This document shows positions 943 through 28,583 of a stretch of 64,000 bases of DNA, piece by piece. The position numbers were made by a program, and so were the translations under genes. Within the stretch, counting starts at the first letter, position 1, and every line of letters begins with the position of its first letter. Origin of the DNA: Epithemia pelagica (taxonomy: Eukaryota; Protista; Bacillariophyta); contig OX337239.1 of assembly GCA_946965045.2 (NCBI GenBank), positions 682,001 to 746,000 on the forward strand, written 5' to 3'. Under the pieces are notes generated by a model. It worked only from the letters and a program-made list of their open reading frames with translations. It made no database searches and was not told the DNA's origin.

Positions 943-2223
943 ATGACAACCACCATGTCGCACCCCAAATCCAAGACCGATTCTGCTGAAATTTCCGCCA
1001 TGTGCAACAAGACCAGCCGTATTCCCTTGTCGGTTCAATCACTATTCCTTCAGTGCAATCTCGACGAGCCAACGGTAGACAACCACGAAGAACAACCACA
1101 AGAAGCACCTCAATCGTTGGCCCAAGAAATCAGCTCATCGACGGTAAGCTTGCCTTGGTTCGTTTCCTTTGGAGTGGTGTTGTCATGTCTCTTTCCACTC
1201 AATCATCCATTTCTCGTCCCTTCTTTGTGACTCTATCAACAGGCTAGTCCTCGTCCATCGACTTGCACCTCGACCTGTACCTTGCATGACTTTTTGGTTC
1301 AATTGTTGGAAGAACGTGGCTACACGGCACTTCCCACTTACGATACCTTGAAGACGAGCTACTACAGTCCTCCCACGGCCTGGCAATTGGCGAGTCATGG
1401 TCCCAAGGTTGCCGAAATGCTCAAAACCAACGACGTGGTGGGCATGTGCGAAGCCTTGGCCGTGGCTGGTTTGTCGCCCAATCCTTGCAATTCGTACGGC
1501 GAATCCTTGGTCCACATGGCCTGTCGTCGAGGACACGTGGTCTTGTTGCAACTCATGGTGGACGCGGGGGCCAGTTTGCAAATTTGCGACGATTATGGCC
1601 GCACACCCTTGCACGATGCCTGTTGGGCCGCCCAACCAGCCTTTGACATTGTGAAACGACTCACCTTGGATTGCGATCGAGCCATGTGGTTCCTCCGAGA
1701 TACCCGCGGATCCCTGCCCCTCTCCTATGTCCACAAGGATCATGAAGCGGAATGGAAATCGTGGATGGAGGCCAATATCGATGCCATGTTCCCCGCCTTG
1801 TCAACCAATGGCGAGGATGCTTGCCAAACGGTGATTCAAGAAATGGCACGGCAATTGTTCCAATCGGACGACATTCCACCACCTCCACAAGATGGTAGAC
1901 ATGTCGTCGTGGTCAAGAAACCGGTGGAATCCGCCAATGTTTCCTTGGAACTCATCAAAATGGTGGCCAATGGCAAAATGACGCCGTCCGAAGCCCGTCT
2001 CATGGCCGATGACATGGCGCGACAACGCGAGGCGGAAGAAGACGAAGCGACCATGGAAGAATCGCAAACGACAGATTACAATGACGATGAGGATTGGACG
2101 GAATATGACGAGTCCTATTACAGCAGCAGCCACTACGACAATGACTTTGACGAAAGTGAAGAAGAAGAATTGGAGGAATTGGAGAATGAACTCGTGGAAA
2201 TGTTGCGAGGCATTGCCTACTGA
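943..2223 (+). CDS. Ankyrin-repeat protein, 2 exons (943-1143, 1243-2223), acidic C-terminal tail
   Basis: Ankyrin motifs GESLVHMACRRGH and YGRTPLHDACW. A phase-0 intron 1144-1242 (GTAAGC...AACAG, 99 nt) joins ORF 913.. to the frame of ORF 1282..2223. Confidence 0.85.
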
Positions 2224-3225
2224 GAGGGCAACCCGACCGGATGGCTGTCGCGACAAATGTAGGCAGCCTTCTAGCAATCCGTTTTCAATGTTCCCTTTCA
2301 GCGAGTGGTGCGCAACCTTTTCTACTGCAAGAAGCGGACAGTTGTCTGTTCGACCCTGTTCCAGTTTCGACCTCTTGTGGATTCGAAAAGTATGGAGTCC
2401 CTCTCTCGAGGGCTCGTTCTTCTTGGAATCCTTCATGCGCATGGTTGACCCGCATAACCTTGCTGGTTGTGGAAAAACCGACTTGAGAATATTCATTATC
2501 ACTCTAATATAATTCATAGTTCTGTATACCACTTTCCATAAACCAAACTCGTACTTAGATAGATACTCCAATGTACTATGTGCCGACGGGAAACATGGGA
2601 TGGCCAAACCAGCTAGTACGCATTCTTTAAAGAGCACAACCTTGAATCGCCACAATGTCGTGGTGGTGCATGTACCGTGCCGAGGCCACGCAAAGCATGT
2701 TTGTTGTCAATTGGTCTTCCCGACTGGTGCGTGCATAGTGCTCTGGTTATGAAGGACATGGTCCGTCCCGCCACAAACAAAAACACCAGACTACCTACCT
2801 AGAGGAGCGTATCAGGTTGTCATACATGAACTTGTGAAAATGGCATGGAGCGGGTTGCTGTTTTGGTTCTCTTGGTTGAAGCAGCGAAACAAACTAGTAC
2901 ATGAACGACATTGAATGGGGCAGAGTTTGTACACCTTCTATATCGTCTTGTCGTTCCTAGTAGGCACACCTAGAATTCCCCACGAACTCAACCACACACT
3001 GTAACCCCTTTTTGTTCGGTGCATGGCTCTTATGGTCAAGCACTGTCGTGGAAGCAAAACACCTGAGCATTGGTAGCAACTACTCCCAAAATGTTTCCGA
3101 AAAAACCGCTGGATCCATCCTAAATGCTTCATTCTTCCCAGCGCACCGACTCCATAACCGAAACGAACCACACCATGCAGATCCAAGAAAAGTGTTTGAA
3201 GCCACGCGCACGCAAAAGCGTCTGC

Positions 3226-5100
3226 TTACATGGACCGACGCCCCCGCCACGGCCGCTGTTGTTGTTGTTGTTGTTGAGGCTCCATGGAACGTCCTCCTGG
3301 AAGGGGTGCCGCCCAATGCCGTTCGTCACGGGGAGGCATACCACCAACCGCACGAGGGGGTGGTGGTGGTGGGGGCGGCGGTGGCGGTGGTCCTCGTCCG
3401 GTTCCACCTCGATTCATGTAACTATTGTGGTTATTGTTATAGGAATTTCGTCGATGCAGCGGCGGTGGTGCACTTTGGGCACGGCCTGGATACTGTTGAT
3501 TCCCATAGCCCCGTCTTCGACCTCCATTGCGAAGGGCCCATTGCGCCGCTTGTTCCTTTTGTTGTTTGCTGCGTTCCACCTGGGCAGCGCCCAAGAGTTC
3601 GTCACGACTACATTCGTCCGCCGTAGGTCGCACACAGCGAAAGCCGTCGTGTCCCTCCTCTCCACAATTCCAACACGTCATGGCTGGTGCTTGTTGTTGT
3701 GGTGGTTGTCGGTGTCGTGGTCGGCCGCGCGTGTCACGATTCTCGTCGGGAAGATCAAAGGTTTGAACCTCGCACGACACGTGTCCAGGTTTGCCACAAA
3801 CCAGACAAATGGCTTGAGCATGGGCGTTTCGTAAAGCTGCAGCAAACTGTTGTTGAAATTGGTCTTGTTGAAATCGTGAAGGTGACGGTCGCACCAACCA
3901 CGGGCACTTATGGGTGCTATGGGCCTGTATATGATAACAAATGGTACAAATCAAGGTGGGTGGTGGACGGCCGGTATTGTTGGGTGGTACCACAAAGCAT
4001 TGCCGGGCAACATGTCCAGGAATACCACAGGTAAAGCAAATGGCCTTGTAGGGACACGACCGAACGTCGGAATGATCCGTGGCGGCACACAGGGGACACG
4101 TTCGGGGTGCCTTTTCGCGTGCCGAGGAGGACAGAGCCGATAACAGCAAGGCGCGATCGGCGACAAAATACCGACTGTCCGTATTGCTGTTGTTATTATT
4201 GTTTGTGACAATTTCCACACGCACGGGTCGTCCATCCAGACTGGTCAATTGATCGCGACAAGCCTTGGCTTCGGTCAAGGAGGCAAACGTGACAAAGGCT
4301 CGACCCGCATTGAGTGGGGCAGAACTAGTGATGTTCGAGTTTTTGTCCTTTTCGTCACCGTCTTCATCGTCCGATTGCATGATAAGCTTCAGATTTTCCA
4401 CCGTTCCAAAAGCTTGACAAGCCTGTTCCAAGGTTTGTGCTGTAGTGGTATATTTGAGATTGACAATCTTGACTTTGACGGCGTCCTTGCTGGTGCTGCT
4501 CGTTGTACTATTGCGCTTGCGTTTCCGACTGGGCTGATCAGGGTCCTTGACATTGGTTGGGGCGGCGGTTTCTTCTGTTTCGTCATCGCTGAGGGGGACG
4601 GATTCCATGGTTCGTCCCAAACGACCATCCCAATCCTTTTCATTCCGTCCAAAGGCTTGAAGAAATTCGTCATTGAGAGGAATCACCGGGGGCGCCTCCA
4701 GAACCTGAGGCGTTCGCGCCTGTTGCAACAAGCGCTGGGCCAATGCTGATTGCAAAACACGCCGTGTCGGAGAATTTGCTAGTGTTGGTGTTGTGCCGTT
4801 CTCTTGTTTTTCGTTCACAGTGGAAGGATTTTGCTGTGAAACCATCATTCCTGCTCCATTCTTCTTGGTTTCCGAAACCATCTTTTCATCCTTGACCCCT
4901 TCGGAATCCGATGCGGCAAACAAATCTTCCTCCTCGTCGTCCTGATCTGTTTTTGAATTGTTCTTGTGAGTGCCATTGGCAGCATCGCCAGTGACCTGTA
5001 CTGTCCCTGCGGCCTCGTCCATTCGTATCACATTTTCTTCTTCTTCTTCTTTTTCGCCGCTTTCTTCCTCTTCCTCACTTAACGATCCCACCAAGGGCAT
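3226..5100 (-). CDS. RRM plus multiple CCHC zinc-knuckle RNA-binding protein (Air1/ZCCHC7-like)
   Basis: RRM with an RNP1-like RAFVTF and about 5 knuckles (CPLC..H..C, CFTCGIPGHVARQC, CTICYH..H..C, CLVCGKPGH, CWNCGEEGHDGFRC). RG/Pro-rich tail. First ATG at 5100. Orthology to Air1 is inference. Confidence 0.8.
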   Translation of the reverse strand: MPLVGSLSEEEEESGEKEEEEENVIRMDEAAGTVQVTGDAANGTHKNNSKTDQDDEEEDLFAASDSEGVKDEKMVSETKKNGAGMMVSQQNPSTVNEKQENGTTPTLANSPTRRVLQSALAQRLLQQARTPQVLEAPPVIPLNDEFLQAFGRNEKDWDGRLGRTMESVPLSDDETEETAAPTNVKDPDQPSRKRKRNSTTSSTSKDAVKVKIVNLKYTTTAQTLEQACQAFGTVENLKLIMQSDDEDGDEKDKNSNITSSAPLNAGRAFVTFASLTEAKACRDQLTSLDGRPVRVEIVTNNNNNSNTDSRYFVADRALLLSALSSSAREKAPRTCPLCAATDHSDVRSCPYKAICFTCGIPGHVARQCFVVPPNNTGRPPPTLICTICYHIQAHSTHKCPWLVRPSPSRFQQDQFQQQFAAALRNAHAQAICLVCGKPGHVSCEVQTFDLPDENRDTRGRPRHRQPPQQQAPAMTCWNCGEEGHDGFRCVRPTADECSRDELLGAAQVERSKQQKEQAAQWALRNGGRRRGYGNQQYPGRAQSAPPPLHRRNSYNNNHNSYMNRGGTGRGPPPPPPPPPPPPRAVGGMPPRDERHWAAPLPGGRSMEPQQQQQQQRPWRGRRSM

Positions 5101-5884
5101 ACTGTTCAAAGTCACAATTGCTTGTTTTCTGTCGTAGCGCACAAAGGGTTCAATGTCTCGCGGTGCGTTGTCTTGGTAGAATCAACCCGAAAGGATGGCC
5201 AACCAATCGTACGGTCAATCTCCGTTTTCCTCGTTGTTCACATGCCCAGCTTCTGCTGCTGCTTCTCTTGTCCGGCAACAGCCAACCACCAATCCACCAA
5301 AAAAAGAGACAGATTCTGTTGATGGGTGTTCCAATTGCAAACGTGAAAATGGAATCCAAGACGGCAACGACAAGACAATCTTCCATCCACAAAGGGAGGC
5401 AATCAGTTTTACATGCAACGATAGAGGATATAGAGGATGGATCCCCAAACCTCGCATAGCGGATGGCTGACAGACTTTTAAAGCGACTCCAGAGTATCCC
5501 GTGAAGCGACCGGTAGCGCGATTCGGTGCTCGGGGCTCTAGCTAGAGCGGAGCAAGTTTGACCATGGTACCATCCATGACAAATCCTGTTTGGCGCTAGA
5601 GAATGCCTCGAGTCAGGAACTTGGAGAATGTTCTACAAGAAGTAGAAAAGGCTTTTCGTCCTTCCTATTGTGTAGTCGAAAACCACCACAAGTCCATTCA
5701 TTGCTATTCAACGCTATCCTCTCTACCTCTCTTTCTACCGCTCTGTCCGTCGCTCGCCACCATCCGACAGCAGCATTGCGTTTTGCAACGATCCCATTGA
5801 TTGTGTCACACGACGAGAGGCCGTGGTTCAGCTCTCTTTTATAGTAAACACAAAGAAGCAATCGCCAACCGCATCAGACGCACC

Positions 5885-6511
5885 ATGGCCAAGGGACGAT
5901 TCAACAAACGTGGAGGCGGTCCTCGTTTAGATGCTGAAAATGCCGATGAAATTGAACAACGAAATGCTCGTTTGGCCGAATTGGAAGAACAACGTGCCCA
6001 ACGACGAGCCGATGCCGAAGACGAAGAGGATGAGGAGGACGACGAAAAGGACGACGATGACAAGGAACGAACGACGACAAGTAGCAACCACGAGGCTTCT
6101 TCCACAGCGGCTGCCGCTGCCAGTGGAGGAGAGGGAAAAAACAAGACGGCAGCCCCTGCTGGACCTGTCACGACACAAGCCGATCACAATCGCAACATGG
6201 CCAAATTGGCCGAAGTACGAAAACGTCGAGAAGAAGCAGAAAAACGACGCAGGGCACAACAAGAAGAAGAATCCAAGGTTTTGGAAGAAGAGCGACAAAA
6301 AATGCAAGCGTTGCAAGTCGATGACGATGAGGATGACACTGGCAAAAAGAAAAAGAATGCGGCCAAGAACATTCCCAAACTGGATAAGATTGTTATCAAG
6401 AAAATGAAACCCACACAAATGAAAGAAGCCTTGAAAGAGCGAGGATTGGATATTCAAGGCAATGCGAAGCAATTGCAACAACGATTATTGGACTATGAAG
6501 CTGCACGGTGA
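5885..6511 (+). CDS. PP28/PDAP1-like protein with a C-terminal SAP domain
   Basis: NMAKLAEVRKRREEAEKRR resembles the PP28 core (DLARLAxIRKQREEAA). KKMKPTQMKEALKERGLDIQGNAKQLQQRL fits the SAP consensus. Transcribed divergently from the 5100 gene. Confidence 0.7.
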   Translation: MAKGRFNKRGGGPRLDAENADEIEQRNARLAELEEQRAQRRADAEDEEDEEDDEKDDDDKERTTTSSNHEASSTAAAAASGGEGKNKTAAPAGPVTTQADHNRNMAKLAEVRKRREEAEKRRRAQQEEESKVLEEERQKMQALQVDDDEDDTGKKKKNAAKNIPKLDKIVIKKMKPTQMKEALKERGLDIQGNAKQLQQRLLDYEAAR

Positions 6512-6599
6512 TGAAATGTATTCAAACAAAAACTGGTTAATAGACAAAAGTTTCTCATGGACTGTCGTTCTAGGATGAATAACATGTCGTACAACTAAC

Positions 6600-6661
6600 C
6601 CAAATGATCTGTAGGCAGAAGAACTATGTTTCCAAATGATTTGTAGGCAGAAGAACTATGT
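6600..6661. repeat. 32-bp tandem duplication between convergent 3' ends
   Basis: caaatgat(c/t)tgtaggcagaagaactatgt occurs twice with period 32. Confidence 0.9.
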
Positions 6662-6982
6662 AATGGAAGGAGAAGCAAATGAAAATGATGGTCTATATCT
6701 TCTTCAATTGACAGATATATTCATGCAAGAAGAGAAACTGACGGCTTGCAATAGAGGATACTGGGTGTACTCGTACAACATGATTGGCAATTAACATGTA
6801 GGAGGGCGAATTTCCTCCACGCACCGCTGCTAAGGAAAGAGGGAATTAAGGATTCACATGTTCACATCCGTCCTGGACAAGGAATCGAAAACTCCATATC
6901 GATGTGGATGAAAGCCACCCAAACTATGGAACTCCACTCTCTACGCTCGATATATCACCGCCTCAAAGGATTCGGCCTTGAA

Positions 6983-9289
6983 TTAGGAGAGTTGACTCAT
7001 GGCGACACCATATTCTTCGTCATTGTCGTCGTCACCAAGACTCGGTTGTTCACTGTGATCCTCTTCCTCGGTGGTACTGTTGGTATGATCCTCGCCAAGG
7101 TACGACAGATTGTACGAATACTGGTTGTTCCGACAATGTGGTGGGTCATCCAGTAGAATGGGGTCCGCAATGGGCATCCATGGATGTTGCCACCCCCAGC
7201 CCCGCCTAAAGGCACTAGGCATGGGCGCTCCTTGTCGTCGTCGACGAACGACCAACACCGCGACACCCGTCACAGCAACAAACAAAACCCAACCAAGTCT
7301 GGACAACATGAACCTCCCTCCTTGTTGATTTTGGTCTTTTGATTCTCCAGCAACAAATGTTTGGGGAGGTGGTGTTTCTCGCACCAGACTCAACACACCA
7401 CTCACGGCATCCTTGTCCTCCGTCGTCGAGGGTGGACAATACTGCAAACTGACACAGGCTTGAGGATCGTGACAAGTGGCGCATGCTTGACAAACGGGTG
7501 GTTTCTCCTGAGATATGGGAAAACCAGCACAAATGGCCCAAAACGCCGTGGCAAAGTTGAGAGCGCCACGTACAATGGCACCATTGACTGTCAAGGTGGG
7601 GACACGAAAGACACTGGATGACCGTTCATTCAATTCCAATGAAAGCAAGGTATTCGGCCTATCATGCCGTGTCCCTCCAGCCTCCAACATGCAATTGTTT
7701 ACCTTGTCTGCATCCACTCCAGCCATGTTCATGGCGTGACTAATACAGTCCGGGAAAACAAGATTTGGATCATAGGAGATTGGTGGTTTACAGAATTTGG
7801 AATAACTCTTGAGATATTCCCACCATGGCAATCCAATGCCATTAGACTCCCCATACAGCTTCCAAATGCAAATGCGACGTAAGCCTTCTTCCACGGAGCT
7901 TCCTGGTAGTTGTTCAATGAGAGGGCTCTTTGCGTCGCAGTAACGGCCGCCATTGGAACAAGAGTTGACGCAATCGAATCCTTGATAGACATATTCGTTT
8001 GGATCATCATTATTGACACGACAACCGGCAAAGTTCCCATTATACAATAATGTACGTGGCGTAAAAAAGGCATGCTCTTGGAGGACTTGAACGACTTGCA
8101 GCAAGTCTGGTACATAGTCTTGGGACAAATCCACACTATGGTTCGCATCCTCGGGTGCCATGGTCATGGTAGGCGACAACCACAAACTATATTCGACACG
8201 TTGTGGTCCTGGATTGATCTCCGGCTGGTCGGTGCTGGTTATTGACTGGTTGGAGTTGGAGCCAATTTGTGTCGGTGGTGGGGGTGGAATGGGAAAGTCG
8301 AGTTGCACCCGAATATCGGATAGTGAGAACTTGGTCTCATTCTTTGGCAGTCTGGGGTGATTGTCCCATTCCATCAATGTCTCTTTAAGGAGATCGGCAT
8401 CGTGTTGAAAGAGTAACATGGAAGGAATTGTTATCTCGTCCAGCATGGCGGGATCGTCCCTTTTGCTATCGGGCAGCATGGTTCCAGGCCTTGATAGGTT
8501 GAGATACAGAGAAGCAAAGGTGCGTACGAATGTGTTAGGAGTCCAATAAAACAAGGATGAAAACCATTCTCTCCTTCATTTGAAACCTTACAATTCATGA
8601 GTACATTCTTGATTCTTGTGGCACACTGTGCTTCCAGCGGCATGGCCGCATACACAGCGGTTGTCAGCGATTAAAACAACCGAGGCACCAAGTGAGTATT
8701 GTGCCATGTGCACTTGATGCGCCACTGAACATTCATCTTCGGGTGCCTTGTCCATTAAGAGGGCAAACGGGCCCAGACTCATCCACGAATGTCTTGGATC
8801 GCCTTTGTGATGATGAAGATGGAATTGATTATGGTGGAGGTGATTAGGTGGCTGTACGGGAAGCGATACATTCAGAACTGATTCGGGCCCATGGCATAAG
8901 GGAGATGTGTTGTTGATGCTTGGCGGCAGGTAATAATAATACAAGGGCAGTTCTTGGAGGGTTTGTCCATGAGGGTAGAGGCCGAAAAGAGCATCGCGAT
9001 GATCGTATCCACGGGCCTTGTACAACTGTTTTGGCAACTGTAATCGCTCCGCATGGAAGTAACGAAGAGACATTCAACGGACAATCATTAGCATTGTATA
9101 GTACGGCCACCGAAAGCACAACGTATCAAGAATGAAAAGCGTACAAGACAAGAAAAGATAAGGGCGGAAAGTTCACATCATCATTCTTCTTACCGGTATG
9201 TTGAGAACGGACGTGGGAGTATCTGGAAGGCCATCACACCCTACGAAGGATAGCATAAGAATGAGCAACCATCGAGGCAAGGCGTTCAT
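6983..9289 (-). CDS. Vacuolar sorting receptor (VSR/BP-80-like, PA domain, type I membrane protein), 3 exons: 9289-9194, 9037-8592, 8489-6983
   Basis: Signal peptide MNALPRWLLILMLSFVGCDG. Introns 9193-9038 (GTAAGA..TACAG) and 8591-8490 (GTAAGG..TCAAG) restore the frame. Motifs GYDHRDALFG, AQYSLGASVVLIADNRCVC, NGGRYC, RRICIW..WWEY and PTLTVNG..AICAGF, then a TM helix LGWVLFVAVTGVAVLVV. Confidence 0.85.
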
Positions 9290-9596
9290 TGCATGGAACA
9301 ACATCATCATTGCCATTTCGAGAAGAACGAATCAACCAAATCTATATGAAAATCATGAGAGGAAATCTGTGCGTGTGATGGCCCGCGCTCGCAAGCAGTC
9401 CAATCACGAGCAACTTGTTCGTTCCAATCACGATCGACCCAATCTCTTAAGTCACGTGCTATATGCTCTACCTTGGAGTTGGAGGGCAACTTCCACTCTA
9501 GCAGTGGGAGTAGGTCGTATACAAGAAAAGAACAACAATCAATCCTATCTTTCATGCTCGAGTAGATGACCGAACAAATCCCTGGTGCTGCTTGTC

Positions 9597-10631
9597 TCAA
9601 TTTGGCATACAGTCATAAGCCACGAGGACAATCCAGTAAACTTTGCCATCGTGGGGGATGTTGTTGGCGGACGACTTGAACTCTAGGTATACCTCGGCAT
9701 CATCCCGATTGATTTCGCCTGGCAAACCAATACTGTCGACAAACTGGTGCGAATCGCTGTAACCATCACCTCGATATTCCGTATTGGTTTCTCCAATTTG
9801 AGGCAGCTTGAACTTGACATCTCCCTTGCCACTGGACCGAAAATCGAACTTGACCTCTAAATTTGCCTTTTTGCCCTTCCCCTTGCCCTGCGACGGCGGT
9901 ACGTCCTCGGGATGTTTTTGGTCCCAATATACAGCATACAATCGATACCATCGTTCATAGCCACTTTGCAGAGGCGGTTGTGCATCGGAACCAAAGGGAC
10001 TGTATAGCTTTACCAGTCTCACATGGTTCTCATTACTGGCAATGGTAACAGGATCATCGTCTCCGGTGCCATAAATGGGGCGTCGATGTACTTCCTCGCA
10101 CTTTTCATAATCAGGTTCCTTCTTTTTCTTAATGTCCTTATGGTAACATTGGATCCTGCCATTAATGGGTTGGTAATCATCAGGTTGGGTAAACCAAATT
10201 TCACAACTGCCAGTAGAACTTGTGGTTGTCGGACGAGCAAATTCAAAAGCTAGACACTCTGATATCATGACGGAGCACATATCTTGACACTCCTGTAAGG
10301 TCTTACCCGCGTGTCGGACATAATCCTTGTCTTTCTCTCCCGCATACCCATTATCAATGCGACAGGCTCCATCGTACATTTTGTATTCAAACGTGGGCAC
10401 AGTGGACAAAGTGCGAAGACGAACTTGATGCATCTTGTTTTCACTTTGTTGTTGATGCTGCTGTTGTCCTCGTTGTCGTTTCTTTGGTTGTTCTGCTTGT
10501 CTCCGTCGCGCACGCTCGCGTTTCTTTTTTGTTTGACCATAGCTTGTTTCGCTTGAGACACCGAAAGGCGTCATGAGAAGAAGGACAAGACATAGTGTAC
10601 AAGTCGCATTGACGAGACGAAAAGTTTTCAT
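9597..10631 (-). CDS. Secreted PAN/apple-domain protein with an uncharacterised C-terminal domain (paralogue 1)
   Basis: Signal peptide, then a PAN cysteine pattern GACR..ECQDMC..CLAFEF..CEIW..CY. The C-terminal domain is shared with the loci at 11357 and 15308. Confidence 0.85.
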   Translation of the reverse strand: MKTFRLVNATCTLCLVLLLMTPFGVSSETSYGQTKKKRERARRRQAEQPKKRQRGQQQHQQQSENKMHQVRLRTLSTVPTFEYKMYDGACRIDNGYAGEKDKDYVRHAGKTLQECQDMCSVMISECLAFEFARPTTTSSTGSCEIWFTQPDDYQPINGRIQCYHKDIKKKKEPDYEKCEEVHRRPIYGTGDDDPVTIASNENHVRLVKLYSPFGSDAQPPLQSGYERWYRLYAVYWDQKHPEDVPPSQGKGKGKKANLEVKFDFRSSGKGDVKFKLPQIGETNTEYRGDGYSDSHQFVDSIGLPGEINRDDAEVYLEFKSSANNIPHDGKVYWIVLVAYDCMPN

Positions 10632-11356
10632 TGTAAATGTCTTGCTGATGGTTTGACGGAAACACTAGAAGAAATTGTGAGAATGTTGCTTGTGTTAGGA
10701 GAGAGGCATGTTGCGCGAGTGGGAAGAAAAGAACATCTGTTGTCGATGTCATCATTGAAAGCATGATGGACCTCCACTATTGTTGCGTATAGTTGGTCTA
10801 TTAAAGCTTATCATTCAATGCCTCCAATCCAATTTCGCATCCTTTCTTCTATTTCGCATCTCCATTTCGCAACCTCTCTTCCAGCTTCCGGATCACATCT
10901 TCAACTTCCGTACGCTCCAGCGATAGTAAAATGGAACATTTAAGACTGGTGCATTTTTTTATTTCTTGAACCACTGAGTTTTCAAGACTCAGATTCAATG
11001 AGTCTCAGTCACGGAACTGCAGGGGTGCTATGCATGCTATCCAACGGTTATGTTCTCTTCCTAATACTCCTACTCCTAGAGTAGTAGAGAGCACAACAAA
11101 GAAACGTAAAAAATATGGGATAATGATCACCCAGAGATTGGAGTCATCGGAATGTAGGACCAGCCCAAACCCAAATAGGTTGCGCATGTCACTATGCGCT
11201 CAAAAGTCGATGTATTCTACTTTCTACAAACGTCAAATGAGCCAGTTGTTTGTTGCCTAACGATACAATACGACTGACAACAGGACAAACTATCATACTC
11301 AAAACATTTCTCTTAGCAACAAATTGTTCATGCGATCACGCAGGACTCGCACGCCA

Positions 11357-12666
11357 CTAGCAATCATAGGCGTCCAACACAATCCAATAGATCACCGCCA
11401 AATGATTATTCGTGCTTGTGTTGGCAGACGACTGAAACTCCAAGTACACGGTGGCATCGTTCGTGTTGATTGCATTGGCTGATCCCGAATCAAATTGGTG
11501 TGAGTCGCTGTACCCTTCACCTCGATACTACTTGTCCGTTCCGGCAATTTGGGGCAGAGTAAAAATGACATTTTGACCCGTTGTGCTGCTGCATCCATCA
11601 AAGTCAAACACCACGCGGACATTGGCTGTGGTCGCTGAGGTAATGGAACTACTGCTGCTTGCTGCAGGATGTTTTTCATCAAAATACACGGCATACACTC
11701 GCCACCATCGATCTTTACCACTGCTCGGTTCCGGTACGTCGGGATCAAAGGGACTGTACACTTTTACCAATGACTGGAGACCCACATCACTCGTAATATC
11801 GAATGGAGCATCGCCACCTGTTCCATAAATGGGACGCCGATGAACACGGTCGCATTGTTTATAGTCTGGTTCGTTGTCCACTACCGTGATAGGCGGATCT
11901 GGCTGTGGCTGCGATGGTGGTGGAGGAGGAGGAACCACGACTGAAGGGATTGGATCTCCCTTGAGATAGCACTTGAGATCACTCACTTGACTAACTGTAT
12001 TGGGAAGAGTTATCCAAATTTCACAATCTCTGCTATTCTCCGAAAATTCAATGGCCTCACAATCGGGGCGGATAGAGTACATGGCCTGGCAAGTCGGCAT
12101 AGTTTGGTTTTGATATTTGAAGAAGTCCGTATCCTTCGTTCCAGAATTCGAAGGAGAGTTAATGCGACAGGCGCCTCCCGGTGCTAACAACATTTCGTAT
12201 TCATACGCAACCGCAGGAGGTGGTGGCGGCGGAGGAGGAGGAACCACGACCGAGGGGATTGGATCTCCCTTGAGATAGCACCACTCACATCACCAACTTT
12301 ATTGGGAAGAGTTATCCAAATTTCACAATCTCCGTTATTCTCCGAAAATTCAATGGCCACACAATCGGAGCGGATAGAGCACATGTTCTGGCAAGTCGAC
12401 AGACTTGGTTGTTTAGATCTGAAAAAGTCCGTATTCTGCGTTCCCGAATTCGAAGGAGAGTTAATGCGACAGGCGCCTCCCGGTGCTAACAACATTTCGT
12501 ATTCATATGCAACAGCTGTCGGAGTAGAAAGACTTCGAGCATCGTCCTGGTGACCCTTGCTGTCTTTATGTTGGAGTCGTCTTCGAAGGTTCGATGTAGC
12601 AGAGGTAGTGGAGGTACCAAGAAGGACCAACGATGTGATGGCATGGAATGGTATGGAGAGCTTCAT
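11357..12666 (-). pseudogene. PAN-domain paralogue 2 with a duplicated PAN module, a 7-nt deletion and a premature TAG
   Basis: ATG at 12666 (MKLSIPF.., signal peptide). Two PAN-polyPro repeats with period 302 bp; the first lacks ATCTCAA relative to the second. An in-frame TAG at 11528-11530 lies where paralogue 1 has E (TEYRG), and homology continues to YWIVLDAYDC*. Confidence 0.85.
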
Positions 12667-13437
12667 GATGATGAATGCAAACAAGTGAAAGAGAAAAATT
12701 ACAACACCGAGAAGTTTCTTTGGGAGTTTCTCGATTTCTCTCCAAAAATATTGTGAGACTGGATTGGATTCTTGCTCAAGAAATCGAAAGTCGAGTAGCT
12801 TCACGATTCTGTGTTGGTTCTCCTTTGTGGGAGCGCGAGTGAAACACACAACATGATGTCATCTACTTTCCGAACCAGACAAGGAGAACACGTCATGTCT
12901 GAATCCTAATTGTTTGTCTCACATTCAATGTCCTGTGAACACCAATCAGCTGCCAAGTTGATCGGACGTGCTCCTTGAATGCATGTATGGGAAATGGGAA
13001 TGTGAGAGATGCAACTTTCGCATCCCCGACATGGTCTCGCATCCTCCTCCTCCGCATCCTTCAGGCATAGGTGATCGCACATAGGTCGTCTTTGTAAGGA
13101 AATCGCATGCCGAGAATGGACGACGTCCATTCCGGAGGACAAATCGTCGAACCGACACCATGGTATCGTCCACGCCATTTCACTTTATTCGAATCACACC
13201 AATCGTTCCCCTGCTCTTTGAGTTGTGTTTCTAGAGGAGCACCGTCGCAACTAATCAAACTTATTTGGAGCTCTGAGAGCTCTCACGCTCTCTTGTCGTC
13301 ATTTTTGTACAGGTAGCTAGCATAGCTTATAGCTTTTCGTCACTCGTGACGTCTGAGTATCTTTTTTTGTGATGTTCCCAAATCACTTAGAGTCGCGTTT
13401 TATGGTGTTGATTGATATACAGAGCAAATAGACGACG

Positions 13438-14970
13438 ATGGCTGCCTTCTTTTCTCTGGGCTTGGCATATTCTCCAACGAGAACGGAGGCATCGATTCTT
13501 AATGAACATGGAGCTGGTGTGAAGTACAACGAAAATGGCTGTTGTGTCATCCACCCGGATGTTGTGCTTCGGGAAAGAGTCCGGGGCATCCGGCGCGTGG
13601 GTCGAGAGACTGAATGGAAGACTTCGAAAGACACCTGTCCCAAGTGCGACGCCTTCTTGCCGTTGCAGCTGGAAGAAAAAGCCACGGCCGTGCGCGACAG
13701 TGCACGGGAGCGACAACTCGCTCTACAAGAGAAGGAACTAGATTTGAAAAAGAAGCAAATGGAGCTGGAATATGCAGAACATGAACGCAAGGCACAACGA
13801 GAACGCCAGGAACTCGAACATCAGCATCGAGGCGAAGATGCGGCAGAGACGTCCAGAGAAGCACGTATCAGGTCATATCTTCCGTGTCAGTCCAACAAGA
13901 TAGCCAATATGCCATTCCAGATTGTACTGCATAGCATAGAGTATGGTGAGTGTTTGATTGACGGTACCTTTGTTGGTGACATTGACGGGAGCACCAGAAT
14001 GCCTCATGGACAAGGAAAGTTTCATGGAAATCACTTCCTGTTCACTGACTATACCTATAAAGGAGCTTTCAAGAATGGAAAACTTCATGGATATGGTGAA
14101 TCCACATACAAACGTCTGGATCTTGAACTTGACGAAATGATGGTTATCACCTACAAAGGGGATTTTGATGCGTCACAGGAACACGGTACTGGAAGATGGA
14201 CAAAGGTTTCTATAGATGGTCGTTTTGAGGAGTCTTATATTGGTAGCTGGGGAGCTGGCCAAAAGGCAGGAAAAGGATGCTTGAAATTTTATGACGGTGA
14301 TTCCTATGATGGGGAATGGAAAGGTAATCTACGCCATGGAGAAGGAGTTATGGAGTATGCAGACGGTCGTTCGTATGCTGGTGAATGGAAAGATGGTAAA
14401 ATCAATGGAAAAGGATGCTTCAAGTATCCCAATGGTGCCTACTATGATGGTGAATGGAAAGATGGTAAACGCCATGGCCAAGGATGCTTCATGCAATCCA
14501 CTGGGGCCTACTACGATGGTGAATGGGAAGATGGTGAAATCAATGGAAAAGGATGCTATAAATTTCATGAGGGCGATTTCTATTACGGTGACTGGAAAGA
14601 TAATTTACGCCACGGAACAGGAGTTATGGAGTATGCAGACGGCGGTTCGTATGAAGGTGAATGGATAAATGGTAAAATCAATGGACAAGGATGGTCCAAG
14701 TTTGCAGACGGTCGTTCGTATCATGGTCAATGGAAAAATGGTAAAATCAATGGACAAGGAAAGATGAAGTACGCCTACGATGCTTTGTATGATGGTGAAT
14801 GGAAAGATGCAAAGAGACATGGGAGTGGAAGATTCGTGCTGCCCTGTGGTGATACATACGTTGGGCCTTTTGTCAATGACAAGAGGCATGGTCAATTCAC
14901 TGTCCACCGTGCGAAAGGTCTGAGACGGATGGAACGTGTCACATTTGTGAATGGCCTAAAGCAATCGTAG
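13438..14970 (+). CDS. MORN-repeat protein with an N-terminal Cys/His motif and coiled coil
   Basis: Many 23-aa YxGEWKDGKxxGxG repeats. N-terminal CCVIHPD..W..CPKC is followed by an E/K/Q/R-rich coil. Confidence 0.9.
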   Translation: MAAFFSLGLAYSPTRTEASILNEHGAGVKYNENGCCVIHPDVVLRERVRGIRRVGRETEWKTSKDTCPKCDAFLPLQLEEKATAVRDSARERQLALQEKELDLKKKQMELEYAEHERKAQRERQELEHQHRGEDAAETSREARIRSYLPCQSNKIANMPFQIVLHSIEYGECLIDGTFVGDIDGSTRMPHGQGKFHGNHFLFTDYTYKGAFKNGKLHGYGESTYKRLDLELDEMMVITYKGDFDASQEHGTGRWTKVSIDGRFEESYIGSWGAGQKAGKGCLKFYDGDSYDGEWKGNLRHGEGVMEYADGRSYAGEWKDGKINGKGCFKYPNGAYYDGEWKDGKRHGQGCFMQSTGAYYDGEWEDGEINGKGCYKFHEGDFYYGDWKDNLRHGTGVMEYADGGSYEGEWINGKINGQGWSKFADGRSYHGQWKNGKINGQGKMKYAYDALYDGEWKDAKRHGSGRFVLPCGDTYVGPFVNDKRHGQFTVHRAKGLRRMERVTFVNGLKQS

Positions 14971-20624: not shown

Positions 20625-20673
20625 ATTTGACATTTGACATTTGACATTCGACATTCGACATCCGAGATCCGAG
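20625..20673 (+). repeat. Heptamer array with stepwise drift (ATTTGAC x3, ATTCGAC x2, ATCCGAG x2)
   Basis: Directly visible, immediately before the tandem duplication. Confidence 0.9.
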
Positions 20674-20889
20674 TACTCATACTAACTCCATACCAGACTG
20701 TGTAGGTAGTTCGTCTCACATATTTATACTACAGTAAGAATTTTTTGTACGACCGGGAAGTAGTTTTGTGCGAGTCGCGCGGTTTCCCTCTCCTGTGTGA
20801 CACTTGTGTGACACTTGTGTGACACTTTGTGACATGGCTTCCATGAATTTCTCACTACCTACACAGCTTGATAGGGAGTAAGTTTACTA

Positions 20890-21059
20890 CTTCCCTGTGT
20901 CTGGCCGTCCTCTCGCGTCGGGCGCGCCCGGCTTGTCGGGAGAATGACTCGACGGGCAATTGTCTTGTCGGGCGTGCGCCCTCCTCGACCATTGCCCTCC
21001 TCGTCATTCTACCCTCCGCGCCGGGCGGTCCCTCCTTGAAAGGACTCGACACCGGGAAG
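20890..21059. mobile_element. Foldback MITE, 170 bp, TA-flanked (Tc1/mariner-type), copy 1
   Basis: TA|CTTCCCTGTGTC ... GACACCGGGAAG|TA (TIR 11/12 match). The internal arms gagaatgactcgacgggcaattgtc and gaccattgccctcctcgtcattcta are also imperfectly inverted. Confidence 0.7.
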
Positions 21060-21264
21060 TATTAATACTAACTCCATACCAGACTGTGTAGGTAGTTCGT
21101 CTCACATATTTATACTACAGTAAGAATTTTTTGTACGACCGGGAAGTAGTTTTGTGCGAGTCGCGCGGTTTCCCTCTCCTGTGTGACACTTGTGTGACAC
21201 TTTGTGACATGGCTTCCAGGAATTTCTCACTACCTACACAGCTTGATAGGGAGTAAGTTTACTA

Positions 21265-21424
21265 CTTCCCTGTGTCTGGCCGTCGGGCGCGCCCGGCTTG
21301 TCGGGAGAATGACTCGACGGGCTATTGTCTTGTCGGGCGTGCGCCCTCCTCGACCATTGCCCTCCTCATCATTCTACCCTCCGCGCCGGGCGGTCCCTCC
21401 TTGAAAGGACTCAACACCGGGAAG
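21265..21424. mobile_element. Foldback MITE copy 2, 160 bp
   Basis: Same TIRs and TA flanks as copy 1, with a 10-bp internal deletion. It arose with the tandem duplication. Confidence 0.7.
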
Positions 21425-21436
21425 TATTAATACTAC

Positions 21437-21674
21437 TGTTGAAACTTCTAACAAGCCGTGCCGTAAAAGCAACTCTTTATAGGCTTATCGAACTACGTAT
21501 TCTCCATTGAATGAGCGTTGGCTCTCTTGTTCGTTCTTTCGTTGCTTTTGCCACGTCTACAAACCAATGTCCATGATTCCGCATCTTGCGAATGGCCTAT
21601 ATCTTGCGAATGGCCAGTCGCACCAGTCGCACCTTGGTCCTCTATATTCACCGGTTGCTCTGCTATCCTCAACA
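21437..21674 (-). repeat. 3' LTR (TGTTGA...TCAACA)
   Basis: Terminal inverted hexamers. The sequence matches 27376-27613. Confidence 0.97.
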
Positions 21675-24600
21675 CACTCCTTTGTGCCGAGGAATGATAT
21701 TTACTATCCGATGGTACATTCATGATGATATCACGCAATTGGTAGAAGATGCGACCTTGTAATGGCTTGGTAAAAAAATCGGCGACCATCTCTTCAGTCG
21801 GACAGAATGCAATATCCATCTCTTTCCGCTTGATGCAGTCCGTGATATAAAAGTAGCGAAGGTTGATATGTTTGGTTCGCTTCGAACTGGATAGCCCTCC
21901 ATTTTTCGCCAATAGAATACTACTCTGATTGTCTTGATGTAGGGTTACGTCCTTGATCTCATGGCCTTGGGCCTGTATGAAATTCTTGGTCCAGATGATA
22001 GACGGGAGTACATCGTGTACCCCAATGAGTTCACATTCAGTTGAACTACGGGCCACGAGTTTTTGTTTCGATGAAGCCGTCACCACTGCTCCTTTTCCCA
22101 TGGTCATGAAACCCCCAGTGTGTCCTTTTAGATCGGGGTGAGTCGCATAAGATGCGTCAACCCACCACCACAGATGCATCATTGGGTCACCTTCTAGACG
22201 CAGGATCAAATCGCGTGTGGATTGTAAATACTTCAGAACCCGTCCGAGTTTGCGGTAGTCATCATCATCAGGAGCCATGACACGGGTGCTGAGAAAAGTT
22301 ATGGCAGTCCGTATATCAGGGCGACCACGTTGTGCCATGTAAGCGAGTTGCATGGTCACACTGTGGAACCGGTCTGATTTTGTTTCATCCAGCTTGTGAG
22401 CCTTTGGGTTCACATGATAAAGGTGTTTGGCTGCGGGACTACGGGCTCGACCGATCCATTCTTTTGGTAAGTCAAGTAGGATGGTCTCAAGATACGATCT
22501 CATATCCACTTGAACCACACCATCTTCCCCATAGTCGAGGAACATGCCAAGGTAATCGTGTCGAGTACCCTCAGACACTGAGATCTCGCCCAACTGTCCG
22601 AACTCCGCTCGTAGGTCATCCAAAAATTGATGAACTACCTTGCCATCAACGTGCGAGACTTTTAAATCGTCAATATGCCACGTCACAGTGAGCTGTCGAT
22701 CGTTTACTTGTTTGTTTGCAACACACGAGTCATATGGATTGATAACAAATCCCCAACTCTTGAGCACGGCGGTAAGCTTCTCCCAAAACAAACGAGCGGC
22801 ACGAAGCGTGCCGTAAAGAGCTTTCAACATCTCCACATAAATCACCGGTTGACCCTTCTCATAGGTCAAGAAAGGAGCGTAGGTGTCATAATCCACTTCC
22901 AGCAATAGCTCAGCCATCAACCCATCTAGTCGCATATATACGTCGGGGTCCATGTCGGAGTGCATGAATGCCCCTGGTATATCAGCTACTGCAACCACGC
23001 GTCGTTCTAGAGCGTCAATCACGGCAGTGATGAAAACGGATTCAGTAGCAACTGTGGGTGATGCCGATTTGGGTTTGTCAATATAAGCTCTTTGCTTTCT
23101 CCCGTCAGCGCAGCCTCTTCCTTTGATTTTGCCACAGCGCTTGCGTTTTAGGAACATCAAGTATCCTAACGCTTCTTGCACTTGGTTCCAAGTTAGATCA
23201 GTTTTATGAACAGCCCGTAGAACACCGCGGTCGTGTAACTGCTGTATCTCCACTTTCACAGCAGCCACGCCTTTATCACCGAACAACTTGATGCCTTTTT
23301 TCATTGGCATTTGTGGTGTGGCCATATTGATTTCTGTTGACACCAAATACAGGATTCCATCACGCAAATAGCCATCGTAACGTCCACGCTGAAGCTTGTC
23401 CACAGCGGCATAAGAATGTCCGTAACGGTGGGCATAGCTTCTTTGTCGATTCGGCCGTAAATTGTATCGGGGTTCATTTTCGGGTTGGTTGTTGTTCTCC
23501 TGTTCAGGATCTACATCCATCCCTAAGTCCTCATCTGTGAGAGATGCTTCTTCTTCATTCTCCTCCTCTACTCCACCGGCTAGCTCCCTTCCCTCATCCT
23601 CCTCATCAGCATCCATATCCATCACAACATCCTCCAAAGCATCATCATAGGTCGAACCGTTACTGTCTTGTTCGTGCGCATCATGATATTGTTCATTGTC
23701 TACTGGGTCAGGCAGATTGACTTCTGCCCCCACTCCTTGGATTTCCAACGGTTCAAGATCCAAATTGTCCAACGGCTGGTTGGGCTCTGGCTCGTTTATG
23801 ACATTTTCAACATCAGGCACGTCATCTTCAGCTAATTCGTTCTCAACTAGATCATCGTCATACCGCAGATCCTCATCCATGTCCTGTACATCTTCATAGG
23901 ACTCGTCATCATCATCAAACAGTTCATTGTTCTCGTCTAGGAACAAGATTCTGTTGTCACGATTGCCGAACGCTAGTCCCGGTTGCATTTCCTGACTTTG
24001 TGCCAACTGATGTACTCGTTGAATGACTTCTGCTGGCATAGGTAAAGCGGTGGCGTGATTCCTTGTGATTACTCTGCCGCTAGCGAGGCTAAGGAAGTAA
24101 TAACTACCTTGCCTGTTACCGGTTGGCCTCAATGCGATAGCTCCGATGGTTCTTGGGGCCATGGTGTTATCGTGCTGTTCATGGCACTGCACGTATTGGC
24201 CAAATTCATACCGACAATGTTTGTTGAAATCGACATGCTCACCGGTCACGAGTAGACGTGGACTTTGTGTTTTGGAAATGCCGGTGTGATGTGGGAAGCA
24301 GTTTAACCAAAATGTGGCAAATTTGGCCAGTTCTATCAACATGACCTTCGGTAGGGCATCGAAAGGAAGCGTGTTATAAACACAGCGCATCCTCTCCTTC
24401 ACAGTCCTGATGTAACGTTCCACATCACCTACATGCTCGTCCCTGGCAGTGGGATTGATGGTGATGCCGAGGAGTTGAAGACTGGCTTGCATATCATCAC
24501 TTGTAAATGCACCATCAGCCAACACAATTCTCGGTCTAATCCCGCCACGTCGGTAAACTGCCACAGTCTTCTTCAGTGATTGTATGATATTGGTGTCAGT

Positions 24601-26613
24601 GGTTGATTGTATGGCGTCTATCGTCCCGAAATGTATTTTCCTTGACGTGGTGACCAGGAATGGTACATTGTTCACGTGCATGACGTCAATGGTCAATGTA
24701 ACATCCTTGTGCTTCTCAGCAATACGAGGTGGTACTGTCGTGGACGTGTCGACAAATGGGGACTTACGTCTCGTTGTCTTGCCTTTGAGCGTTCCCAAAT
24801 CTGGTCCGTAGATCTTCTCGGCCCTGTATACATCGTCAGTAGTAATGTCAGCGTTTGGTAATAGGTTGTGCCTTAGGATATGAAGATAATCCTTGGTAGA
24901 AGGCCGTCCTATCTTCGCTAAGAGTGATCTGGCCAGCTTGGCTCTACGAATTTCTTCCGGGGAGTAAGAATCTTCGTTTTCGCTAACAGTTGTTACGAAG
25001 CTACTCTGTAACGTCGATGTATCCAGGTAGAATTAACCTTCTGGGCTTGGATTGAACTTGTGTTTCAGCCTACCAGTGGCTCGGTCATGTAAGGCAAATG
25101 AATTTCCACGGTCGCTGTCATATTTGATGTGAAATCTTGTGTGTGCGTTGTTTAGGGAGATGATGTTGGCTGGACCCTCAGGATCATGCCATACGATGCC
25201 ATATCCAGGCAGGAGTCCTCGCAACTGAAGAGTCCTCTGTCCGGCATGACTCTGAATGACGATGGGAGTCTCAGACGAGTGAATATTTTTTAATAAGGAT
25301 GGATCTTTGATGATGTCAACGGTGGACTGATTGTCCAGTAACAGCCATTGAGGGGGAATGCTAGCCTGCATGGTCGAGGAAGAGAAAACATAATCAGGTG
25401 AGTCGCAGTTGACGGTTGAGCCCCAGTTTAATGAGGTTAGCACACCTCGATTGGATTCATTGTTACCCTCGGCTTGTGAGTTGGTTCGATTTGAGCGACT
25501 CTGTGTTGTCGATGCTTGGGAGCCACTTGCATGTGCTTCTGTTGCCGTTGTCGCATTGGAGTGGCCTGTCATGGTGGAATCGGGCAAACTCGTCTCTCCA
25601 CTTGTTACATACGCCACACCGGTGGCGTTGTCGGGCTGACCGTTGCTCTGACCAGGATTGTTCTTTGGTTTTCCTGTCATTCGATTGTCCAGGATCGCAC
25701 GAGCATTGGCAAGCGTCTTGGGGTATACATTCTGTCCATCCAAGAACATATTTTGCAAATGTGCTTCGTACTCCTTGTTGCCACAAGATCGGATGAATCG
25801 AATGGCAATACAACGATTTTGGGCGTCCTCGTGGTCATCGGAAGAAGGTGTTGTGTGTTTCTTTTCCTTCGCCACTCGTTCCAACATGTCCTTATCGTAC
25901 AGGACAATACCGGCTTCATTCATGACCTTGACTTTGGCTCGGAATACCTCGTAATATGAATGGAGGCTTTGATTGTTTCGTCGCCTCAGACTATAGAAAT
26001 CTTCCTTGAGCTTATCTCGGGCGACAAGAGTGAATATGCGTCCGGAATCAAAGGTGAATGTGATTTGCTTGATGAGTTTCAAGAGATCCACACCGTCACG
26101 CATCTTCTTGATCTCTCCAAAGGTCTCGTGGGCCTGTAGCTTATCCTTGAGTAGCGGAGTACACTGTCCCATAATCAAGCTGTATAGAGCTGCCCGAAAG
26201 TTTTTGTAGAGGACCATTTGATCTTGGCGTGCTTTGTACGCCATCTTCCACTCTTCCACTTGGATCATATCTGTGGGGTCTTTTGGTTTTGTTGCTTCTT
26301 CTGGGTCGGGTAGTTCCAATGCTTCGAGTGCTTGTTGGAACTCTTGATTGTGTCGATCAAAATTACTACCGACGTAGCCGATCAATAACTCGACGTTTCG
26401 TAGATAGCGCTTCGATTGCGGATCCTCACTGTAGTCGAATATGCATTCTTTAAGCGACGGTTCTTGGCCTTGAAATCTAGGCGAGTTGGATTGTTGAGCC
26501 TGATTCTGCCATCCTCGTCCTCTTCCTCGTCCGCCTCTGCCTTGACGTTGTCCACTCGACCGGGAGCTAGACTCAACCGTGTCTGGACGATTTGCGTTGT
26601 CTTGTTGAGACAT
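21493..26613 (-). pseudogene. Copia gag-pol polyprotein interrupted by a single in-frame TAA (25033-25035)
   Basis: Protease LLDNQST, integrase D..D..E (TIDVMHV, LADGAF, VERYIR), RT (DIPGAF, LYG, HIDDL) and RNase H (VDASY, SSTECE, QDNQS, ADFFTKPL). ORFs 25033..26613 and 21493..24798 share a frame, and the intervening 78 codons are open and CoDi-like. Confidence 0.9.
21675..21683 (-). other. Polypurine tract (AAAGGAGTG on the minus strand)
   Basis: Purine-rich run abutting the 3' LTR. Confidence 0.75.
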
Positions 26614-27361: not shown

Positions 27362-27375
27362 TTCAATGGAGAATA
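27362..27375 (-). other. Primer-binding site complementary to the element's own LTR (self-priming type)
   Basis: Minus-strand TATTCTCCATTGAA abuts the LTR and is the exact complement of TTCAATGGAGAATA at 27450-27437. Confidence 0.8.
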
Positions 27376-27613
27376 TGTTGAAACTTCTAACAAGCCGTGC
27401 CGTAAAAGCAACTCTTTATAGGCTTATCGAACTACGTATTCTCCATTGAATGAGCGTTGGCTCTCTTGTTCGTTCTTTCGTTGCTTTTGCCACGTCTACA
27501 AACCAATGTCCATGATTCCGCATCTTGCGAATGGCCTATATCTTGCGAATGGCCAGTCGCACCAGTCGCACCTTGGTCCTCTATATTCACCGGTTGCTCT
27601 GCTATCCTCAACC
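27376..27613 (-). repeat. 5' LTR (outer terminal base altered, TCAACC)
   Basis: 237/238 identical to the 3' LTR and followed by the TSD ACTAC. Confidence 0.95.
27448..27455 (-). promoter_or_regulatory. Initiator-like element GCTCATTC, predicted LTR transcription start at about 27451
   Basis: Matches a TCA(+1)TTY initiator, resembling the oomycete GCTCATTY motif. The start position is inferred. Confidence 0.55.
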
Positions 27614-28583
27614 ACTACTCGTACTCCGCATCTACACAAAGGAAAGAGTATTCGTAGTTCGTAGAGAAGTAATCTGCAATCTTCATTCGTCAGGTTGGAC
27701 TTCAATGACTATAAGACTAGCTAGGATTGCTTGTCCAGCTGGTTGAAGAACACAAATTACAAATTCCATAATTGATCTTGACTTTATCAGGATCAAATTT
27801 TAAGTTTCAATCCAGATATTTTCTATTGAAAATAATCACACTAGGTATTTGCTGTATACGTCTCAGTTGACCATTGTTCATGGTCTACTCCTCATGCCTC
27901 CGTTGCATTTTTTGAAATACAAGTCGGCTTCACTTTCAAAGTTTTGTGATTTCAGACCCCAAGAGCCTCCCCTTTCCCCTTCTCCATGTATTGAAGCATT
28001 CCGAAAAGGGGCGTATTTTGAAAACGAACTTTCCGCCCCTCAAAACGACCTTGAAATTTGTAAGTTTCTAAAGGGGTTATTTTGATATCTCCTTGGTCCT
28101 AATGAATGTTTCGGGGGAGAGAGAGGCTGAAATTTTCCTGTTCACTTGGGGGGGACATGACTGCGCAAAACTGCGTCAGTGACTTTCTGAGATTCTGACC
28201 GGCATGGTTCGGGACAGATTGTATCAATGGCTCCTGATTGGTCACCATGACCTCGTACGTACAAGCGCGTTGGCTTTCGTGTTTCGGTGCGATTTATCGT
28301 AGCTACCACCAAAAATGCAACTGCTGGAAGCAAAATTCCTGTATTCTTCATTCTCCTGTTGGCTTTTGTCCTGGGTGAACAACAACGGCCTTCGTTCATA
28401 AATTTTCGCCGTGTGCCGTTCCAAAATTTCATTTGCTCCCTTGAGACCACAGACAGTAGTGACTCGCTCTGTATCGCAGCAGCAGCTTGAGAGTGAATCT
28501 GTCCTTTGCGCAGAAGACGACAGGAAGTCTTCAATCTATTCATTGCAGCGGAGAAAGAGACCACTGCTTGATAATTGTTTACC

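Follow-up and report, generated by a model that had tools for sequence, protein, structure and literature searches.

How does a retrotransposon begin to copy its RNA into DNA when the bases next to its 5′ long terminal repeat (LTR) do not look like a binding site for a tRNA primer? The question is raised by a complete LTR retrotransposon that lies on the minus strand (27613-21437) of the window, by which we mean the whole 64,000-nt stretch of Epithemia pelagica DNA that was analyzed. A first-pass annotation of this DNA had suggested that the element, placed in the Ty1/copia superfamily, is primed by the start of its own transcript. The sequence features on which that suggestion was built were reread on the minus strand and are all there. 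The 14 nt abutting the 5′ LTR (27375-27362) match the reverse complement of a segment within the LTR (27450-27437) exactly, with agreement at 14 of 14 positions. They follow directly on the LTR-terminal CAACA at 27376, and they lack the TGG with which a tRNA-type primer-binding site (PBS) would start. Pairing stops at both ends, with A facing A at 27451/27361 and C facing A at 27436/27376. The loop that would be enclosed holds the inner stem that had been described for it, AAGCC (27425-27421) with GGCTT (27396-27392), and this stem is paired in the minimum-energy fold.

The element itself is a young, recently inserted Ty1/copia LTR retrotransposon of a diatom. It has LTR ends of the TG...CA type, a 5-bp target duplication and a polypurine tract before the 3′ LTR, where the purine-rich sequence reads AAAGGAGTG. 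Between 27376-27612 and 21437-21673 the two LTRs are identical at 237 of 237 positions, and they differ solely at the base with which they start, where the 5′ LTR has G (27613) and the 3′ LTR has T (21674). The reverse transcriptase (RT) is located in the C-terminal part of pol and matches the Pfam family RVT_2 (E = 1e-13, 52-54 bits, with a cut-off of 31.6). The 550 aa before it gave no sequence match in Pfam or the PDB; a D..D..E pattern can be seen by eye in this stretch, which lies between protease-like and RT regions, and an integrase-like region ahead of the RT, as read from these letters, fits the gene order of Copia elements. A Pfam search with the 232-aa product of ORF1 returned no family match. 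The named homologues of Pol belong to Mayamaea pseudoterrestris and Nitzschia sp., both of which are diatoms. Table 1 lists the features of the element together with the predicted sites in relatives from other assemblies.

Table 1. Features of the window element, and primer-binding sites of related elements from other sources.
Element	Feature	Positions in window	Strand	Basis or remarks
Window	Target-site duplication GTAGT, 5′ copy	27614-27618	−	Identical 5 nt flank both element ends
Window	5′ LTR, 238 nt, TGTTG...CAACA type	27376-27613	−	237-nt exact repeat; ends and flanks read directly
Window	Initiator-like GCTCATTC	27448-27455	−	CTCA kept directly before primer segment in related families
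Window	Predicted self-primer TTCAATGGAGAATA, first 14 nt of transcript	27437-27450	−	Exact complement of PBS; covariation with PBS
Window	Inner stem AAGCC/GGCTT (helix 2) around U5 hairpin	27392-27425	−	Minimum-energy fold; 86% of cells paired
Window	Small U5 hairpin GTTG / 6-nt loop / CGGC (helix 3)	27399-27412	−	Inside conserved block GTTGCYTTTACRGCAC
Window	Predicted PBS TATTCTCCATTGAA	27362-27375	−	Abuts LTR, without TGG, complementary to 27450-27437
Window	ORF1, 232 aa	26619-27317	−	Between PBS and gag-pol, other frame
Window	gag-pol, first part, 526 aa; closes at in-frame stop 25033-25035	25033-26613	−	Sister copies without stop
Window	Rest of pol, 1101 aa; DDE-like integrase core (by eye) upstream of Copia-type RT	21493-24798	−	Pfam RVT_2
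Window	Polypurine tract AAAGGAG(TG) immediately before 3′ LTR	21675-21683	−	GGAGTG before TGTTG kept in relatives
Window	3′ LTR	21437-21674	−	Exact repeat and flanks
Window	Target-site duplication GTAGT, 3′ copy	21432-21436	−	Flank reading
L030	PBS TATTTTAAAAAGAA			Pairs 14 nt
L032	PBS TTTTCGCTATAGAG			Pairs 14 nt
L031	PBS TAATCTCTACGAAATTA			Pairs 17 nt
L035-L037	PBS TAAATCGAATAGAG			Pairs 14 nt
L038-L040	PBS TTTTACCCGTCGAA			Pairs 14 nt; LTR partner 104 nt from LTR end
L034	PBS ATTCACTAAAAAAA			13 nt after LTR, 14 with the terminal A of the LTR; LTR partner 109 nt from LTR end
L042, L043				13/14 pairing; older copies, LTRs 97.7-98.7% identical

Within the window copy the complementarity stands out clearly from its background. 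For a fixed 14-mer, the expected number of exact complements in a 238-nt LTR is about 8e-7 by simple arithmetic. As controls, the 20 nt that follow the 3′ LTR match over at most 5 nt, and 300 random internal 20-mers match over at most 8 nt, with a mean of 5.6. When the 94-nt RNA from 27451 to 27358 is folded, the helix between the predicted primer and the PBS closes the structure at −30.4 kcal/mol (z = −5.45), and none of 200 shuffled sequences folds as well.

Relatives of the element in the same genome (60.5 Mb in 23 contigs) provide a wider view, as it contains about 11 copies of the window family along with many related families. Of 20 elements taken whose Pol is 60-76% identical to that of the window element, 17 allowed their LTRs to be delimited. 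Every one of these 17 has, immediately behind the 5′ LTR, bases that complement a segment of the LTR lying 46-62 nt from its end; the pairing is complete over 14 nt in 16 elements and extends to 13 of 14 in one (L019). Counting the window copy, this genome uses six different 14-mers, each matched by its own LTR; besides TATTCTCCATTGAA, the PBS sequences are TAAACTCCATTGAA, TAATCTCCTTAGAA, TATTCTCCTTAGAA, TATTTCCAATAGAA and TTTTACTCATCGAA. A plain-letter pattern search on the LTR/PBS design yielded no new variants within the 80 letters shown per match. The pattern (TCATTC...TTTACAGCA...ACA...GAAA) also matches once outside any element, at 62561-62642 of the window, where the anchors enclose unrelated sequence and the match is probably due to chance.

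The paired design of PBS and LTR is also found in at least four other sources, probably diatoms, with identities in Pol reaching down to 42%. The PBS/primer pairs outside this genome have unrelated sequences. Overall there are 14 distinct pairs, 12 of them perfectly Watson-Crick and two, from older copies, at 13 of 14. Complementarity between the PBS position and the element's own LTR was seen in 23 of the 24 elements examined, and in 22 of the 24 the pairing begins at offset 0 from the LTR end. The exception is an element of Mayamaea pseudoterrestris (L033, GCA_027923505.1), in which the LTRs are 100% identical, the PBS position pairs over just 7-8 nt and the CTCA context is lacking; rearrangement of this copy, or a different arrangement in its lineage, may account for this. 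For one further sequence (L041) no LTR pair was found in the stretch examined. An internal comparison is offered by L031, where an element of the self-priming type (LTRs at 4971-5142 and 10613-10784) is nested, within 2144-14500, in an unrelated Copia-like element on the opposite strand. This host element has 378-nt LTRs, and the sequence after its 5′ LTR has no complement in the LTR beyond 6 nt, which shows that the method does not find such pairing everywhere.

Changes in sequence between these families bear directly on whether the two segments are held together by pairing. Twelve sequences, 11 from this genome and L030, were aligned and analyzed with RNAalifold and by counting pairs. RNAalifold recovers the helix between primer and PBS (helix 1) on this alignment: 100% of its cells are paired, and two-sided changes occur at 9 of its 14 pairs, with one-sided changes at none. 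None of 500 shuffles reached the observed values, and pairing falls to about 50% when the partner is shifted by a single column. Compensatory change between PBS and LTR among relatives, which the first-pass annotation had proposed as a check, is thus present, and it extends over 14 distinct covarying pairs. The intact duplexes contain neither a G-U pair nor a mismatch over 12 distinct pairs, whereas helices 2 and 3, inside the loop, have both G-U pairs and one-sided changes. Helix 2 shows two-sided changes at four pairs; it is kept in the closer families and is absent from more distant ones. In helix 3, 98% of cells are paired, with alternation between U-A and U-G, and the block that carries this 4-bp hairpin is conserved across the families of this genome, the variant in L030 having one substitution. 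When the R-U5-PBS segment of each family was folded, the primer-PBS helix closed the structure, with z-scores from −3.7 to −6.8.

The host genome was searched for another source of the primer. Exact copies of the 14-mer number 32 in the 60.5 Mb, all of them in the LTR/PBS sets of the window family, and none was found outside elements. A variant with one mismatch, TACAATGGAGAATA, has about 15 genomic copies and was considered as a candidate tRNA; it is part of the region that encodes the RT in a different Copia family, and at the nine sites of this variant that were examined ARAGORN identified no tRNA. All one-mismatch sites examined were either RT coding sequence or without a tRNA. Among the best 63 of 1840 tRNA candidates, none overlaps a site of the 14-mer with one mismatch or fewer. 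A host tRNA matching the PBS, for which the earlier annotation had advised looking, was accordingly not seen among these 63 candidates or at the near-match sites. Furthermore, since there are 14 PBS sequences and each is mirrored in its own LTR, a host RNA cannot explain the pairing.

The position of the predicted primer within the LTR suggests where transcription might begin. The motif YTCA, usually CTCA, directly precedes the LTR partner in 20 of the 24 elements tabulated. In those of them that belong to this genome an A follows the PBS, so that the helix ends at a clash of A with A. Kadono et al. have proposed TCAH+1W as an initiator-like motif of diatoms (PMC4686930). Applied to the window element, it would place +1 at 27450, the T that forms the first base of the 14-mer; the classical YYA+1 would place it at the A at 27451. 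Under either reading the 14-mer is predicted to form the 5′ terminus of the RNA, an arrangement like that of Tf1. Initiator-like motifs of this kind are short and common. Two sets of sequences were considered as evidence from transcripts and rejected. The element was found in three runs, X1-X3, whose contigs, with records of up to 509 kb, resemble DNA, and in no RNA run. The JGI and Logan contigs L035-L040 have ends that fit breaks made by an assembler at the repeated LTR, one of them entering flanking DNA, and for this reason their ends were not counted as evidence for start sites.

These observations point to a mechanism like that of Tf1, in which the window element would be primed by its own RNA instead of a host tRNA, and we consider this reading of the sequence quite probable. 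The first-pass proposal of self-priming for this copia lineage has gained strong support from the covariation and from the result that none of the examined tRNA genes carries the 14-mer. More broadly, the clade of related elements most likely begins DNA copying with its own transcript. The RNA would begin at the conserved initiator CTCA|T, some 75 nt from the end of the LTR. Its first 14 nt would then pair back with the 14-nt PBS next to U5 and close a loop of about 60 nt with small stems, and the RNase H of the element would cut after the duplex. The 3′-OH that is freed in this way could be extended through U5 and R, and plus-strand synthesis would later copy the primer while it is still attached, rewriting the PBS in each cycle. 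Because the PBS would be rewritten from the primer, the two segments would stay perfectly Watson-Crick while their sequence drifts between lineages, and the lack of G-U pairs in the intact duplexes is what would be expected from such rewriting. One of the relatives in this genome is informative in this respect. In L019 (G000:C7:3717169-3726252) the 14-mer of both LTRs ends in C and the PBS keeps T, which reduces the pairing to 13 of 14; this fits a cycle in which the 3′ R would supply nucleotides 1-14 of the progeny R, and the primer or the parental PBS would supply the new PBS.

Different explanations can be proposed for a conserved helix at this location. It could be a structure of the 5′ leader that serves another role, such as packaging, dimerization, translation control or strand transfer, with priming carried out by something that was not recognized. 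Leader structures are common in retroelements, covariation proves pairing and not priming, and the start site is a prediction from a motif, all of which lend this explanation some weight. The location and chemistry of the helix argue against it: the 3′ arm sits exactly at the PBS position (offset 0 in 22 of 24 elements), leaving no room for another PBS, there is no TGG-type site after the LTR, and the 5′ arm comes directly after the conserved initiator-like motif. G-U pairs should also be acceptable in an ordinary structural helix, and helices 2 and 3 contain them, yet the 12 intact pairs have none. On balance, we regard a leader structure with some other function as improbable.

An external primer has precedents, since priming by internal or half-tRNA sequences is described for Copia, for Ty5 and for several plant lineages (PMC6317226), and it is conceivable that a host tRNA, a tRNA half or another small RNA identical to the LTR 14-mer primes the element, the copy in the LTR being incidental. 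In our own reading the shape of the 14-mer is loosely like that of a D-arm, and the survey of tRNAs scored the best 63 of 1840 candidates. A single host RNA would be insufficient for 14 sequences in related families, each of them matched by its own LTR; no exact 14-mer occurs outside elements in the 60.5-Mb genome, and the near matches examined are not tRNAs. Priming by a host RNA is thus very improbable. Coincidence, or an artefact of low complexity or palindromes, has in its favor that the 14-mers are A/T-rich and that some are partly self-complementary. Set against this are an expectation of about 1e-6 for one element, controls that match over just 4-12 nt, and the recurrence of the pairing at the same position in relatives with different sequences, so that chance can be given almost no credence.

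Self-priming is established for Tf1 and Tf2 of Schizosaccharomyces pombe and inferred for the Tf1/sushi group (PMC7175516; PMC6317226), and experimental proof of it is confined to that group. In Tf1 the duplex with the PBS is formed by the first 11 nt of the RNA, which RNase H cleaves between nucleotides 11 and 12 (PMC7175516). The likeness to the diatom elements is considerable. In Tf1/Tf2, as here, the PBS abuts the 5′ LTR and complements the start of the element's own RNA (a predicted start in the present case), the fold-back duplex closes a loop with further U5 stems, and there is no site for a tRNA. There are also clear differences. Tf1 belongs to the Ty3/gypsy superfamily, whereas the window element has an RVT_2 RT with a putative integrase upstream of it, the order of Copia elements. 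The duplex has 11 nt in Tf1 and 14 nt (13-17) in the diatom elements, and the hosts are a fission yeast, S. pombe, and a diatom, in which start and cleavage are predicted. Members of the Tf1/sushi group have a Gypsy-type RT, and their integrase follows RT-RNase H. With its RVT_2 RT in the C-terminal part of pol, the window element falls outside this group, and the likeness is one of mechanism only. As two different superfamilies are involved, convergence of this lineage with Tf1 is plausible.

A prediction of self-priming also exists for plant elements. The first-pass annotation knew of no description of self-priming for Ty1/copia; this was wrong, as an earlier study had predicted it for TAR, a lineage of plant Ty1/copia elements (PMC6317226). 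The prediction was made by Neumann et al. in 2019, who also cite an earlier proposal of self-priming for Houba and Osr-1 (PMC6317226). The TAR lineage, which includes these two, resembles the diatom elements in belonging to the Copia superfamily and in having self-priming predicted from sequence (PMC6317226). It differs in its plant hosts, the host here being a stramenopile alga, and relative to TAR, which was compared by its published description, the diatom case adds broad covariation and a conserved initiator context. Among diatom elements, the CoDi groups, such as Blackbeard and Surcouf of Phaeodactylum (Maumus et al. 2009), are likewise of the Copia type; the paper of Maumus et al., which founded the study of diatom Copia elements, treats neither the PBS nor priming (PMC2806351). 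A literature search found no description of self-priming, or of priming, in diatom elements. In another example, the fungal GalEa elements of the Copia superfamily also have no tRNA-type PBS and carry a conserved hairpin in its place, termed the ‘Conserved Hairpin Site’ (PMC5445492). That hairpin is local and palindromic, and its authors found no complement to it in the LTR (PMC5445492), whereas the partner in the diatom elements lies within the LTR at the predicted start of the RNA.

The comparison extends self-priming, as predicted from 14 covarying pairs in a diatom Copia clade, to the stramenopiles and to a second Copia lineage, TAR having been compared by description. A broader interpretation, which we offer tentatively and with some doubt, is that a large diatom Copia clade, probably spanning several genera, does without tRNA primers, that the freely drifting primer/PBS pair acts as a lineage-specific ‘address’ by which every family favors its own RNA, and that the arrangement arose independently of both Tf1/sushi and plant TAR. 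If an independent origin in diatoms is true, self-priming would be either repeatedly evolved or very ancient in both superfamilies of LTR elements. The 14 primer/PBS pairs make up an unusually clean natural series of mutations for the selection and cutting of a primer, and the primer segment predicts where transcription of the elements would start. There is also a practical consequence for genome annotation, as these diatom elements, which are abundant and apparently recently active, will be overlooked or wrongly classified by LTR finders that require a tRNA-type PBS.

The window copy differs from its sisters in its coding capacity. Several sister copies at other sites of the genome keep a frame that stays open for 1714-1760 aa, and the stop within gag-pol of the window copy means that proteins from sister copies would be needed. 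At 25034, within this stop, the DNA contigs of runs X1-X3 have a different letter. The surroundings of the copy are also repetitive, with a tandem repeat in units of about 375 nt, seen as three overlapping repeat families that are 98-100% identical, occupying 20672-21435 of the window and adjoining the 3′ end of the element. The element may have inserted into, or beside, a minisatellite-like array.
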